Part shown: positions 53,475-60,821 of the stretch, piece by piece | Layout: every line of letters starts with the position of its first letter | Position numbering within the stretch: the stretch's first letter is position 1 | Sequence record: OQ722176.1 | Strand: one strand, 5' to 3' | Length of the DNA stretch: 64,000 bases | Notes under the pieces: generated by a model | What the model saw: only the letters and a program-made list of their open reading frames with translations | What the model was told of the DNA's origin: nothing | Databases searched by the model: none | Program-made: the position numbers and the translations under genes

Positions 53475-54001
53475 CAGAACCAACACTGACTGACTGGAAC
53501 GAGCTTAAAGACCAAAGCTTAGTGTATCGTATCAATAACGAAATACTACACCCACTCGGCTATGCTGCTGTACTCAATACCGAAACAGGCACAAGTGATC
53601 GCGTACTAATTGCTAATGACGTGTTCGAATTCGCACCAGAAGCTCACAACAAACATAAAAACAATGTCACCATGACTGGCTTACTCGCGACTCATAAAGT
53701 AGTAGAACAACAAATCGCTAGTAAGTTCGGACTGCAAGACATATGGCATAATCTAGTAGACTGTACCGATAAAGTGTTCGTCGCTGATAACTCAGATCTA
53801 GAAAAAGCATATGAGTTCCAATACGCAGATACAGAAAACGAAATCACTGAAGGCGATTGCTATGCAATAGAAGTATACGGCACATCGGTATGGATATCTG
53901 ATGACGAACAGTTCTTACTAACTGCTTGTAACGACGGCTGTGGCAATAGAGATATGTATCTCTTCGCGCTAAAGAATCTATCTAATGTAGAAATGTATTA
54001 G
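53471..54001 (+). CDS. Hypothetical two-part protein
   Basis: ATGA coupling. Confidence 0.6.
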   Translation: MTEPTLTDWNELKDQSLVYRINNEILHPLGYAAVLNTETGTSDRVLIANDVFEFAPEAHNKHKNNVTMTGLLATHKVVEQQIASKFGLQDIWHNLVDCTDKVFVADNSDLEKAYEFQYADTENEITEGDCYAIEVYGTSVWISDDEQFLLTACNDGCGNRDMYLFALKNLSNVEMY

Positions 54002-54012
54002 AAACTTAAAGA

Positions 54013-54048
54013 AAAGGGTTGACAGTAGTCAGCCCTTTCGCGTATCAT
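54013..54048 (+). promoter_or_regulatory. Terminator-promoter fusion cassette
   Basis: AAAGGGTTGAC-AGTA-GTCAGCCCTTT; TTGACA-18-TATCAT. Confidence 0.8.
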
Positions 54049-54078
54049 ACACATATCAAATCAAGAAAGGAAAACATT

Positions 54079-54252
54079 ATGATTGGTCTATCTATTATAA
54101 TACTCGTGTTCGTCGTGATTCTAGCGTTTGACTCAGTTGAAAGCCTAATGAGCAACGAACACCGCATTGGCATGTGTATCTTCCTTGTAGTGTGCGCTGT
54201 CGTTAACGTAGCTAACATGTTTGTTATGCACAAATACGGAGTAATGCTATGA
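54079..54252 (+). CDS. Small two-TM protein
   Basis: SD AAGGA. Confidence 0.6.
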   Translation: MIGLSIIILVFVVILAFDSVESLMSNEHRIGMCIFLVVCAVVNVANMFVMHKYGVML

Positions 54253-54413
54253 GCTTAACAATACTTCTACTCATACTCGTATGCTGTGTAGTACTAACAG
54301 CTATCTGTTTGTTCAGCTTCATCAACAAACCTGGATTTGTTAAACTAATACTCACTGCTGTACTCGGCTTTATCTCATATGTGCTACTACACATCACGGC
54401 TGGTGCATTATGA
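54249..54413 (+). CDS. Small two-TM protein (54 aa)
   Basis: Manually read; ATGA coupling on both sides. Confidence 0.55.
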   Translation: MSLTILLLILVCCVVLTAICLFSFINKPGFVKLILTAVLGFISYVLLHITAGAL

Positions 54414-54592
54414 GCGTGCTATTAATGTTCTTAATCGTTATCGCATGTGCCAGTGTCGTAGTAGCTCTATTCTGTTTTATCATATGCCTATTCGATGATA
54501 ACGAATCAGACAAAGACTCAGACAAAGACAGTAGCTCATTCGCTACTAGAGAATCAATGAACACGTGTATTCGTGTAATGCAATCAATGTGA
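54410..54592 (+). CDS. Small one-TM protein
   Basis: Coupled ORF. Confidence 0.55.
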   Translation: MSVLLMFLIVIACASVVVALFCFIICLFDDNESDKDSDKDSSSFATRESMNTCIRVMQSM

Positions 54593-54599
54593 GAATACT

Positions 54600-54811
54600 A
54601 TGAAACAAACAATCCGTGCTATCTGTATCGACAATCAATCTCATCGTATAGACTTGCCTCAACCACCTAGCGGCTTGACAGAAGGCAAAGAGTACATTGT
54701 CCACATGTATAACGTAAACGAACATACAAACCACCTATGATTCGTATTACTAACGATGACAATCAACGCGCTAGTTACGTCGCTGTACGCTTTAATCTAA
54801 TCATTCAATAG
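54600..54811 (+). pseudogene. Small beta-barrel protein apparently split by a 1-nt deletion near 54728
   Basis: AICIDN..LTEGKEY stops at 54740; MIRITNDD..YVAVRF continues in -1 frame. Confidence 0.4.
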
Positions 54812-54820
54812 GAAATCATT

Positions 54821-55360
54821 ATGAAATTAGTTACTACTACTCGTACAAAACACTATGTCAAGAACTTCGACTACATTCGTATGACAAACGGCGAGAAATG
54901 CCGCATCGGTCATGTCGTACGTACGTTCAGCCCTAAAACAAAAGAACCTATGTTTATCATAGAAGACCAATATTCAGGTCACACAACTCAAATCAAAAAC
55001 ACTATGTGGAACTATGCTATTAGCTTAAATGATGAATGGCATAAAGTACATTTCCATTGGCACGACCGTGATGTGAATGATTCAAATGTCCTAGTATACT
55101 ACAAAACAAAAGAAACAGTAGATGAACTCAGTGTAGGAGATGTGCTTCGATTACGTACACGTCGATTCAAAGATAAAGAGTACCATTACAGTGATGAACT
55201 ATATGACGCGACAATCGTACTAATGAATCGCACTCAATTAGTCGTAAGCGTGTCAGGCAAGTTCGTGACGTTCGATACCACAAAATTCCAATATGATAGC
55301 TATACTGCGGATATAGACGGCAAATTTGTTTTCGATAGTGGCTGTTCACTGCGTGCGTAA
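54821..55360 (+). CDS. Hypothetical protein, paralog of 55877 gene
   Basis: ELSVGDV..DATIVL..QLVV. Confidence 0.65.
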   Translation: MKLVTTTRTKHYVKNFDYIRMTNGEKCRIGHVVRTFSPKTKEPMFIIEDQYSGHTTQIKNTMWNYAISLNDEWHKVHFHWHDRDVNDSNVLVYYKTKETVDELSVGDVLRLRTRRFKDKEYHYSDELYDATIVLMNRTQLVVSVSGKFVTFDTTKFQYDSYTADIDGKFVFDSGCSLRA

Positions 55361-55451
55361 AACCGCTTAGAATCGCGCTCAGAGCGTGTCAGAGCATGGT
55401 ACGTTATTGATTAAAACTGATATATCGCACCATGCCTCGTTTAAAAGCACA

Positions 55452-55559
55452 TGTGCATAAATCTGTGGATAAGATGTGTGTAAAACTGTGCATAAGTTAT
55501 TAAAATTGTGGATAAAATACAGATTTTCGTGTGGATAAGTCTGTGGATTACGTGGATAA
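55452..55559 (-). repeat. Array of 8 co-oriented DnaA boxes
   Basis: TGTGGATAA at 55464, 55507, 55530; TGTGCATAA at 55452, 55487; TGTGTAAAA at 55477; 1-mismatch boxes at 55542, 55551. Confidence 0.88.
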
Positions 55560-55730
55560 GTTTTTGGTGTCAAAAATCGGTGATGTCTCATCGGCTCCTG
55601 TGTAGTAAAATGCAGTTGCGGATGGTACTTGCCTCGTGAAAATCTAATCCGCTTCGCATCTTTCTGCTTGACATGCAATGCCATCCTGTGAGAGAATGAG
55701 AAGCCAACTGAACCACCTTGGGAGGGTGAT

Positions 55731-55877
55731 ATGATTACATTAGCGTTGTTCTATATGAGCCGCGACATGAGTTACAGTGAGCGACCAAGTGATTTATATC
55801 TTGGTACGTGTATTTTAGACTTAGCCATGATTATAGTGGCGTTCTGTGGTATGATGATGTTTACGGGAAATTGGTAA
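55731..55877 (+). CDS. Small membrane protein (48 aa)
   Basis: SD GGAGG; TAATG coupling to next gene. Confidence 0.55.
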   Translation: MITLALFYMSRDMSYSERPSDLYLGTCILDLAMIIVAFCGMMMFTGNW

Positions 55878-56491
55878 TGATTAGTATTGAGTTACACAAG
55901 AAAGTAGTAGAGAAGAAAGCAGTATTGCCAGATCAAGCAATGGTGCGAATCGAGACGTATTACCGTTCGTTGAGTGGTTATATGAACTTCATTGATTCGA
56001 GTCATCAAATTCGTGGTGTTACTGATGGTACATATATGCTTGTTACTGAAGATGGTGCATTCTTTAACATAGAGAAAGACCGTGTGAATGGTGATAAGCA
56101 GACACGTGAAAAGCACGATGGTCAGCTTGTAGCGGTACATGCGCGATTAGCCTTGCCTGCGAAAGATTGGGATTGGTATCCATGTAAGTGGAAAAGCGGT
56201 CGTCTTGTCTATGAGTATAAAGAGCAAGATTTCGTAGAAGAGAAACACGAGCTAGTGGTTGGTGAGATAGTAGACATTTTTGCCGCTGACGATGAGTATG
56301 CCGAAGCGCCAGTTGATGCAACTGTAGTGTTGAGTCGTCCGGGACAGATTGTAGTAGAGCGTGATGGTGTATTGGTTGCTTTCAACATTGACAATATGCG
56401 TTCGTCTGGTAATATTGTATCTGACTGTGGTGATCATCTACTAGTGGGTAAGTTTGCCGTAAGCGAATACGACGAAGAACTTCATTCGTAA
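55877..56491 (+). CDS. Hypothetical protein, paralog of 54821 gene
   Basis: ELVVGEI..DATVVL..QIVV. Confidence 0.65.
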   Translation: MISIELHKKVVEKKAVLPDQAMVRIETYYRSLSGYMNFIDSSHQIRGVTDGTYMLVTEDGAFFNIEKDRVNGDKQTREKHDGQLVAVHARLALPAKDWDWYPCKWKSGRLVYEYKEQDFVEEKHELVVGEIVDIFAADDEYAEAPVDATVVLSRPGQIVVERDGVLVAFNIDNMRSSGNIVSDCGDHLLVGKFAVSEYDEELHS

Positions 56492-57276: not shown

Positions 57277-57663
57277 ATGAATTTATTCGCGCAAGTCGCT
57301 AGTGACCTGCTAGAAGACGAAGATCTAATGTCTAGCGTTGAGCGTTATACTTGTCATATGATGGAAGATCGCATGGCAGTTATTGCTCCTCATATCCCTT
57401 TTTTCGACGTTGAATCGTACATTGTCAATAAAGGTCGCGAGTTCTTACACGCCATTAACGACAATCCAGACTTGCTTGGCTATGAGTTAAGCACACCGTC
57501 GAAAGAGTCACTTGCTGATTCTATTCGCGACAATTGGGCCGGTGCGTTTGTACATGTGCTTTCTTACGATGAAAATTGTCGTCGTGATATGAACGCTTTT
57601 ACGCTATGTCGTAAAGCATGGTTGAAATTTATCGTGGATGCGAATGATGAAATATCTCTATGA
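57277..57663 (+). CDS. Tandem paralog A
   Basis: LLED..RYTC..RKAWLKFI. Confidence 0.65.
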   Translation: MNLFAQVASDLLEDEDLMSSVERYTCHMMEDRMAVIAPHIPFFDVESYIVNKGREFLHAINDNPDLLGYELSTPSKESLADSIRDNWAGAFVHVLSYDENCRRDMNAFTLCRKAWLKFIVDANDEISL

Positions 57664-58078
57664 GATTCAACAAGCGGTTCGTGAACTGCTAGAAGACCAG
57701 TCTATATTGAGTGATAAGACTCGTTATACTTGCAACGAAATCGCCACTGCCGTAGTTGCTAGAGCGTGTGAATTTGATGCATCATATCGTATTGGCATTC
57801 GAATAGCGGTTAAAAACACGTTATCAGAAATCGGTGGTCAATTTGTAAACTCGGTTTATGCCAAAGCTAAATCTGGTGAAATTCAGTTATCAGAAATTGC
57901 CATGACTAAAATTGCCAATGATATGAAAATCGACTATTATCGTGGTACGTTTATTCATGACATTTCACGTATTGGTGAGAAAGAATACGACTTAGAGTTG
58001 TTTGCCGAGTATCGTCGCCAATGGTTAGAGTTCATTTTGACTCAATCTAGTGAGCATGAGAACCGCAGAAATGCTTAG
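57644..58078 (+). CDS. Tandem paralog B
   Basis: LLED..RYTC..RRQWLEFI. Confidence 0.65.
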   Translation: MMKYLYEIQQAVRELLEDQSILSDKTRYTCNEIATAVVARACEFDASYRIGIRIAVKNTLSEIGGQFVNSVYAKAKSGEIQLSEIAMTKIANDMKIDYYRGTFIHDISRIGEKEYDLELFAEYRRQWLEFILTQSSEHENRRNA

Positions 58079-60360: not shown

Positions 60361-60507
60361 ATGTATGCCATACGTCCGTGTTTCAATGGCTTTCTCTGGA
60401 AAGTCGTTATATTCGCGAACAACTATGACCGCGGTACAATCTCGTATCACTTCACCAGAGCAGGCGCATATAACTTGTGCAAGCAACTTAACGAGGACAG
60501 ACAATGA
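60361..60507 (+). CDS. Small hypothetical protein (48 aa)
   Basis: Manually read; coupled. Confidence 0.45.
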   Translation: MYAIRPCFNGFLWKVVIFANNYDRGTISYHFTRAGAYNLCKQLNEDRQ

Positions 60508-60821
60508 GCCAAATGGAATACAATAAAGGCATTCTACATCTTGTGGATAAGTCTGTGGATAAACTTGCTGAAGAGTTAGTAAGTGATTCTGACTTGCCGT
60601 ATTGGTGTGAGACCAAGCTTGAATATCTACGGGAAAACTCAGAAGAGTTCGGGTTGGTTTTTATCAAAGATCTTTGTTACCGTGTAACGTTTGAAAACGA
60701 GCGTGAAGATCTGTATCAGATTGCCAGAGCCGAAGTTCAGCCGAATGGTGATATTCACTTTGAGACGTATCATTATAATGGTGGTGCTCACTGGACAGAA
60801 GTTGTAGAGGGTGCGTTATGA
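60504..60821 (+). CDS. Hypothetical protein containing a tandem DnaA-box pair
   Basis: SD GAGGA; YNGGAHW. Confidence 0.65.
   Translation: MSQMEYNKGILHLVDKSVDKLAEELVSDSDLPYWCETKLEYLRENSEEFGLVFIKDLCYRVTFENEREDLYQIARAEVQPNGDIHFETYHYNGGAHWTEVVEGAL

Follow-up and report, generated by a model that had tools for sequence, protein, structure and literature searches.

A conserved, co-oriented array of DnaA boxes in T4-like vibriophages and its possible role as a sink for the host initiator

Phage vB_VspM_VS2, a member of the KVP40 group (Straboviridae, genus Schizotequatrovirus) with a genome of 250.5 kb, was found to carry eight boxes for the host initiator DnaA within 108 bp of an intergenic spacer. 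The array occupies positions 55452-55559 of the window, by which is meant the whole 64,000-nucleotide stretch of record OQ722176.1 that was analyzed, with window position 55000 corresponding to genome position 179000; over window positions 55000-56100, identity to the VS2 genome is 100%. Comparison with related phages supports a real DnaA-box cluster, kept by selection in two phage genera. T4-type phages are the textbook case of DnaA-independent replication and, because replication of this type needs no DnaA, a selected DnaA-box array across two genera of T4-like vibriophages is unexpected. The array lies at 179.4 kb of the VS2 record, that is, internally, in a 370-bp gap between a plus-strand open reading frame (ORF) ending at 55360 and the next plus-strand ORF, which begins at 55731. 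Six boxes match the consensus TTWTNCACA exactly and two have one mismatch, all eight are on the minus strand, and the start-to-start spacings are 12, 13, 10, 20, 23, 12 and 9 nt. The original prediction, made from the sequence letters alone, had listed eight boxes in a T4-like phage; their coordinates, sequences, strand and spacings were all recovered exactly as given, and the type of phage was named correctly. Its count of six exact boxes agrees with the consensus, but the box at 55477 is weak and is not conserved in that register. Exact matches to the consensus number 15 in the window, compared with 9.5 expected from shuffles, and 31 in the whole VS2 genome, where the 23 matches lying outside two clusters correspond approximately to chance from base composition. 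These two clusters, the array and an intragenic pair at 60542/60554, are the only ones in the genome. By a Poisson estimate with the rate taken from the window, the chance of six same-strand matches within 87 nt is about 1e-12.

The homologous spacer was cut from 12 relatives and aligned with that of VS2 (13 phages), nine box-bearing phages being used in the comparison of the boxes. The array was found in three clades, the first with VS2, QD01 and VS1, the second with phiST2, VH7D, phiGrn1, Va3, XZ1, ValKK3, R10Z, R11Z and PVA23, and the third with nt-1 and CZ01, of which nt-1 is classified in the genus Mylasvirus; a search with the array alone as query located it in 17 records. Seven of the eight box positions are kept in the three clades. 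Box 1 (TTATGCACA, 55452-55460, exact) is separated by 3 bp from box 2 and reads TGTGCATAA, TGTGTATAA or TGTGGGTAA according to the clade. Box 2 (TTATCCACA, 55464-55472, perfect) and box 4 (TTATGCACA, 55487-55495, exact) are invariant in all nine phages, and box 5 (TTATCCACA, 55507-55515, exact) varies at the N position alone (G or T). Box 6 (TTATCCACA, 55530-55538, exact) opens a host-like triple completed by box 7 (TAATCCACA, 55542-55550), 3 bp beyond it, and by box 8 (TTATCCACG, 55551-55559), which abuts box 7; the last two have one mismatch each, at a base that is also non-consensus in the host triple described below. The weak box 3 (55475-55485) can be taken as TTTTACACA at 55477, under a relaxed consensus, or as TTACACACA at 55475, with one mismatch. 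The first register is present in VS2 and QD01 only, the other clades keeping just the TGTG core, and the box reads better as a degenerate TGTGTGTAA at 55475, 12 nt ahead of box 4. With box 3 placed there, the 12-nt start spacing of pairs with a 3-bp gap is common to boxes 1-2, 3-4 and 6-7. Repeat analysis of the array revealed two periods, 12 and 23, and about four related units of two boxes each, so that the array can be described as a two-box unit with a 3-bp gap that has been multiplied, together with a single abutting box.

Variation among the relatives is distributed unevenly over the array. When the weak box 3 was left out, 3 of 56 columns were variable in the box cores versus 19 of 37 in the spacers (Fisher p = 4e-7), and the free N position of the consensus varies in three of the eight boxes. 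Substitutions that avoid the box cores and fall in the spacers and at N form the pattern that selection on the DnaA motif itself should leave behind. It is very improbable, in our judgment, that the 9-mers are instead the sites of a phage-encoded DNA-binding protein, or a recent and functionless duplicated repeat, with a merely coincidental match to DnaA. In favor of this reading, the internal repeats show growth by duplication, and none of the neighboring genes has an assigned function. Nevertheless, variation occurs exactly where the DnaA consensus permits it, the invariant positions are those that DnaA reads, three to five perfect copies of TTATCCACA are present per phage, and the same triple is conserved on host chromosomes; in addition, a neutral repeat would not outlast divergence on the scale observed for the spacers and for the KVP40 species.

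The KVP40 species itself (KVP40, phi-pp2, V07 and VH1_2019) keeps both flanks of the array at about 90% identity and has a spacer of nearly the same length (334 nt versus 335-336 nt), but alignment of the middle 125 nt showed zero boxes and just scattered identity to the array. Loss in this species is the simplest reading, because the other genus has the boxes, and the array must be dispensable for a successful phage, since the KVP40 species does without it. In the conservation check suggested with the original prediction, seven of eight boxes were kept in three clades and two genera, and none in the KVP40 species. A scan of IMG/VR by flank motif yielded 112 mostly chance matches, among which just KVP40 and VH7D were recovered.

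Coding and RNA explanations of the array were considered and rejected. A minus-strand open frame of 101 aa (55379-55684) spans the array and is annotated as a coding sequence (CDS) in phage QD01 (QD01_174, PV785814.1). This frame is open in VS2 and QD01 only, being interrupted in the other clades, and it gave no PHROG or Pfam family match. Moreover, TTATCCACA is stop-free in all frames, so a run of such boxes is open by construction, and the CDS annotated in QD01 is very probably spurious; the non-coding location that had been predicted holds. A structured RNA was discarded likewise, as the intergenic spacer had no Rfam match at E <= 10 and the consensus fold of the 13 aligned sequences reached -5.5 kcal/mol without meaningful covariation, with no conserved fold among them.

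A counterpart of part of the array was found on host chromosomes. Scanning bacterial genomes with the pair formed by boxes 6 and 7 gave matches in many phyla and, in two Splendidus-clade Vibrio, TGTGCATAAGTCTGTGGATTGCGTTGATAA was located in the gap that separates the 3' end of rpoH from the start of glpE. Motif-independent retrieval via GlpE extended this to V. parahaemolyticus, V. harveyi, V. alginolyticus, V. vulnificus and Photobacterium toruni (five of the seven species), and the pattern TGTGGATAA-N3-TGTG(G/A)ATTG-CGTTGATAA was present in the rpoH-glpE spacer of all seven Vibrionaceae (six Vibrio species and P. toruni), after which come GATC sites (GGATC-N4-GATCCAC) and additional boxes at scattered positions. 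Of the 30 positions of phage boxes 6-8, which read TGTGGATAAGTCTGTGGATTACGTGGATAA in the VS2 and nt-1 clades, 25-27 are identical in the host triple, and both of its non-consensus bases are shared, namely a T in box 7 (position 8) and a C in box 8 (position 1). Local alignment scored 49-52, compared with a shuffled maximum of about 32 and with 19 for KVP40. In E. coli, no counterpart of boxes 6-8 was found on the chromosomes, the only matches being on plasmids. Phage and host elements have the same layout of a box, 3 bp, a second box and an abutting box; they differ in that the host has three boxes and paired GATC sites, whereas the phage has eight boxes and no GATC. Boxes 6-8 may be either host-derived or subject, together with the host triple, to the same constraint for cooperative DnaA binding. 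The rpoH-glpE element looks like a candidate DnaA and SeqA control site, and we know of no description of it; its match to the phage array thus points to a possible new host control locus in Vibrio.

Among the functions weighed for the array, the one that we prefer, tentatively and knowing that it may well be wrong, is that of a cooperative binding platform for host DnaA that would act as a sink growing with phage copy number. The titration of host DnaA offered in the original prediction is likewise plausible, and the match of boxes 6-8 to the conserved Vibrionaceae triple lends it indirect support. The array consists of about four tandem two-box units with 3-bp gaps, plus the abutting box, set between two co-directional early transcription units. 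Host DnaA, in its ATP or ADP form, would bind the perfect boxes, and head-to-tail neighbors would fill the weaker ones, giving a short DnaA filament over the 108 bp. Each replicated phage genome would then add seven to eight strong sites, so that the pool of sites would rise with copy number and could draw DnaA off oriC and off DnaA-controlled promoters, the decoy being modeled on the Vibrionaceae DnaA-box triple. We infer DnaA binding and the sink effect, the filament step being deduced from the sequence together with the behavior of E. coli DnaA at boxes of this kind. How the phage would benefit is a matter of speculation, and the advantage might lie in halting new rounds of host replication or in altering DnaA-dependent host transcription. 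KVP40-type DNA is not known to be modified; if it is indeed unmodified, the phage lacks the simple option that T4 has, the destruction of host DNA containing cytosine, and might profit from keeping host initiation quiet. If DnaA does bind, the array would offer a handle on how large lytic phages with no known DNA modification deal with the host replication programme. Binding to consensus boxes has been reported for DnaA in either nucleotide form, along with its titration by boxes on the chromosome (PMC12371093); in B. subtilis, initiation is restrained by clusters of DnaA boxes that lie away from oriC (PMC3245932).

Several considerations weigh against a sink. With a single infecting genome, only about eight sites join a few hundred already present on the chromosome of the host, and with so small an addition the sink would matter only after amplification, when blocking host initiation may gain little. 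The strict orientation and the 12- and 9-nt spacing suggest a defined nucleoprotein structure over mere titration. The location between promoters fits a local role equally well, and the whole KVP40 species thrives without boxes.

Comparison with the chromosomal loci that act on DnaA helps to place the array. The datA locus needs an IHF site and promotes the hydrolysis of DnaA-ATP. As in datA and in the B. subtilis clusters, consensus boxes stand away from the origin with room for many DnaA molecules, and the expected effect is less free DnaA; the chromosomal boxes are spread over several hundred bp, whereas the phage has eight in 108 bp. The phage array also differs from datA in having no conserved IHF consensus, and from chromosomal clusters in general in that phage copy number climbs during infection. 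DARS1 and DARS2 are likewise small DnaA-box clusters, and DARS acts on DnaA and not on replication directly; unlike them, the phage array is wholly head to tail, the DARS core requiring boxes I and II to be opposed (head to head) 5 bp apart, in addition to box III (PMC6868365). Only consensus-type, head-to-tail boxes are conserved in the array, with none of the accessories of an origin, datA or DARS that were scanned for, and this fits a plain binding or titration site. By elimination, the array is a simple cluster, dense and co-oriented, in which most boxes fit the consensus.

The surroundings of the array bear on a local role in transcription, in which bound DnaA would form a roadblock or insulator against read-through from upstream, or would tune the downstream promoter to the level of host DnaA and hence to growth state. 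On the left, block A (55361-55399, plus strand) contains CGCTTAGAAT (55364-55373) and TCAGAGCATGG (55389-55399), both invariant in the 13 phages and separated by a variable 15-nt spacer. Its pattern looks promoter-like; a consensus scan gave TTCACT-17-TAGAAT at 55345-55373, the first hexamer of which is inside a non-conserved gene, and the -35 hexamer is not conserved. The block ATCGCACCATGCCTCGTTTAAA (55426-55446, plus strand) adjoins box 1 on its left and is kept in the KVP40 species too. To the right of the array, block B (55587-55645, plus strand) includes CTCATCGG, invariant in the 13 phages; over the remainder, the VS2 group and the KVP40 group share about 90% identity. Further on, 109 bp downstream of the array, is an early promoter of the sigma-70 type (55668-55697, plus strand), TTGACA-18-GAGAAT, in which a TG precedes the second hexamer. 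It points toward the next gene cluster, 13 of 13 phages keep TTGACA and TGTGAGAGAAT, and the promoter is one of a series of plus-strand sigma-70-type early promoters. A repeated regulatory cassette was rejected, blocks A and B being single-copy in the window. A direct repeat, made up of TGCCTCGTTTAAA (55433-55445), which is the core of the block ATCGCACCATGCCTCGTTTAAA, and TGCCTCGTGAAAA (55630-55642), with copies 197 nt apart, brackets the array, and both copies have versions in the KVP40 species.

We regard such a transcription device as unlikely. DnaA is an established repressor, activator and block to elongation in E. coli, and the array stands amid the same-strand series of early promoters. 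The scan found no terminator-like site between the end of the upstream gene (55360) and the next promoter, and the promoter-like flanks are conserved even where the boxes have been lost. Some B. subtilis DnaA-box clusters regulate neighboring genes (PMC3245932). Counting against the device, the array stops 109 bp before the -35 hexamer, a long distance for direct control, and eight sites exceed the needs of a roadblock. The KVP40 species, moreover, has the same transcription layout without boxes, and the likeness to the host chromosomal triple is left unexplained.

A host-like origin had also been put forward in the original prediction, and the array was compared with known origins in this respect. 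Such an accessory, DnaA-dependent origin would let DnaA open the adjacent DNA or stall a transcript to form an R-loop, providing early entry of the replisome at one of several redundant origins, as in T4. Origins in T4 are individually dispensable, so that loss in the KVP40 species would be tolerable. In oriC, strong boxes are few and are mixed with low-affinity sites for ATP-DnaA, with gaps of 2 bp; an unwinding element lies next to them, and oriC further has a site for IHF, numerous GATC sites and a right half of opposed orientation. In E. coli, box R1 adjoins the unwinding element, and the boxes of the array read TGTGGATAA on the plus strand, like R1. On the side that matches this order, a variable AT-rich stretch of 14-25 nt is found within an inverted repeat, GCATGGTACGTTAT/ATATCGCACCATGC (55394-55435, 86% complementary, with a 14-nt AT-rich loop in VS2), the arms of which are conserved and the loop of which varies in sequence among the phages, with no covariation support. 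The array is placed between promoter-like elements, and transcription activates many origins. As for R-loop origins of the T4 type (oriF/oriG) in particular, in which a promoter precedes an unwinding element where the transcript stays hybridised, a conserved promoter-like block does lie upstream of the array, but its -35 hexamer is not conserved. The co-oriented, close boxes of the array resemble the left half of oriC in favoring head-to-tail DnaA oligomers, this being how oriC half-sites build them (PMC6868365).

Scans for further parts of an origin were negative, none of them being aimed at low-affinity ATP-DnaA sites. No conserved AT-rich unwinding element was found among the aligned phages, the least stable DNA being inside the array and in VS2 only, and the AT-rich stretch to the left being short and variable in sequence. 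No run of at least three TA[GA] trinucleotides (DnaA-trios) was present on either strand in any of the 13 phages. The IHF consensus WATCAANNNNTTR had no exact match in them, and its one-mismatch matches were not conserved in position. A second, opposed array was not found either, all eight boxes being on one strand and the sole opposed 9-mer adjoining box 1 having three mismatches. GATC is absent from 53795 to 55931 (2.1 kb around the array), and the absence noted earlier for 55380-55600 is correct. The window has 167 GATC sites (about 1 per 383 bp) versus 265 expected, with no shuffle as low, and at the window rate a GATC-free stretch of 220 bp has a probability of about 0.56. Since GATC is under-represented throughout the window, its absence at the array is not significant, and the insensitivity to SeqA deduced from it by the original prediction is devoid of content. 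GC skew passes through the array unchanged and has no extreme there, for which reason an origin by GC skew was rejected; the published skew "origins" of phiGrn1 and phiST2 are elsewhere and track the direction of transcription (PMC5107563). The array is thus distinguished from oriC in these scans by having no conserved unwinding element, IHF consensus, GATC cluster or opposed half. T4-type replisomes load their own helicase, and we know of no use that they would have for DnaA. Together with the flat skew and the absence of boxes in the KVP40 species, these results leave the host-like origin unsupported, and we consider even an accessory one unlikely.

In the literature that could be searched, no paper was found tying DnaA boxes to KVP40-like or other T4-like phages, and a DnaA-box cluster appears, as far as that search reached, to be unreported for this type of phage. 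The original prediction knew of no description in T4-like phages, and none was found; however, the kind of element is known in lytic phages, T5-like phages having been described with eight boxes, paired across 3-bp gaps, in the part of their terminal repeat called the injection-stop (iss) region (Davison, bioRxiv 10.1101/866236). It was proposed that membrane-bound DnaA holds the T5 DNA there (10.1101/866236), a question cited as unresolved in 2026 (PMC13250531). Both elements belong to strictly lytic phages and are non-coding, with about eight consensus or near-consensus boxes, pairs with a 3-bp gap and conservation in relatives, and a role in replication is judged unlikely in both. The T5 boxes differ in being in the left terminal repeat, within two sets of inverted repeats (IRC/IRD), in both orientations and tied to two-step DNA injection, whereas the VS2 boxes have a single orientation, are internal to a T4-like record and have no inverted-repeat frame around the pairs.

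T7-like phages of the genus Berlinvirus were also found to have co-oriented arrays, with four to six perfect TTATCCACA and several one-mismatch copies at or near the genome end, as in Shigella phage A7 (NC_048180.1, 22-150, matched at two places) and Escherichia phage P483 (about 1500-1620). Additionally, of 119 IMG/VR contigs with the 3-bp-gap pair, 30 have at least four boxes within 200 bp, the contigs being unrelated. Arrays of perfect boxes reach eight in 150 bp at 11-12 nt spacing, with boxes of opposite orientation following in some; the loci include L079 (5976-6124), L099 (434-588), L031 (3860-3998), L089, L112, L121 and others, and the podovirus-like contig L079 has genes for a portal and a terminase as well as for a T7-type primase-helicase.

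Records of several relatives are linearized in the conserved right flank of the array, namely MT612988.1 (R10Z), MT612989.1 (R11Z), ON190025.1 (PVA23), ON190024.1 (PVA8) and OM782678.1 (PC-Liy1). These five ends lie 30-60 bp downstream of the array (approximately 55625-55655 of the window), those of R10Z and PVA23 being 29 nt apart, and they may reflect either a convention in editing the records or a genuine preferred end of the DNA.

By analogy with T5 iss, and perhaps with Berlinvirus, the array might serve in the anchoring or handling of phage DNA by DnaA, through tethering to membrane-associated DnaA, protection or positioning. The T5-like terminal repeat with eight paired boxes and its membrane-bound DnaA proposal (10.1101/866236), the co-oriented arrays of A7 and P483 at or near a genome end, and the linearization of relatives' records just downstream of the array would all agree with such a role. 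The difference of 29 nt between record ends from different laboratories may nonetheless reflect editorial choice, and the T5 model is itself just a proposal. Genomes of T4-like phages are also circularly permuted and have no fixed end, and anchoring of this sort seems to us improbable.

A broader scenario, doubtful at present, is that at least three unrelated lytic lineages (T5-like phages, Berlinvirus and T4-like vibriophages) independently took up DnaA-box arrays, that of the vibriophages being a multiplied rpoH-glpE site used to capture or reprogram the host initiator. If true, this would be a takeover of host replication control based on DNA and not on protein. The T5-like and Berlinvirus arrays suggest, by analogy, that the use of DnaA by lytic phages may be general.

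The second cluster of the VS2 genome is an isolated pair of perfect TTATCCACA boxes with a 3-bp gap (60542-60562, minus strand), within a plus-strand ORF of 105 aa (60504-60821, phrog_6035). The pair encodes VDKSVDK, and its 21-mer is one base off that of array boxes 6-7. Both boxes are kept in VS1 and QD01 despite a change in the spacer (GTC/GTT), and the pair is absent in phiGrn1, KVP40 and nt-1, being specific to the VS2/VS1/QD01 lineage.

As for the genes around the array, the upstream gene (54821-55360) is present in phi-pp2 and phiGrn1, but KVP40, QD01 and phiST2 lack it, which marks the left edge of the spacer as a gene-content breakpoint. The first gene downstream (55731-55877, plus strand) encodes a hydrophobic protein of 48 aa (phrog_16778). 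The genes 54821-55360 and 55877-56491, which flank the spacer, are weakly related (phrog_32648 also matches phrog_13976, E = 2e-4). Further downstream, the overlapping adjacent genes 57277-57663 and 57638-58078 both belong to phrog_4354 and are tandem paralogues.

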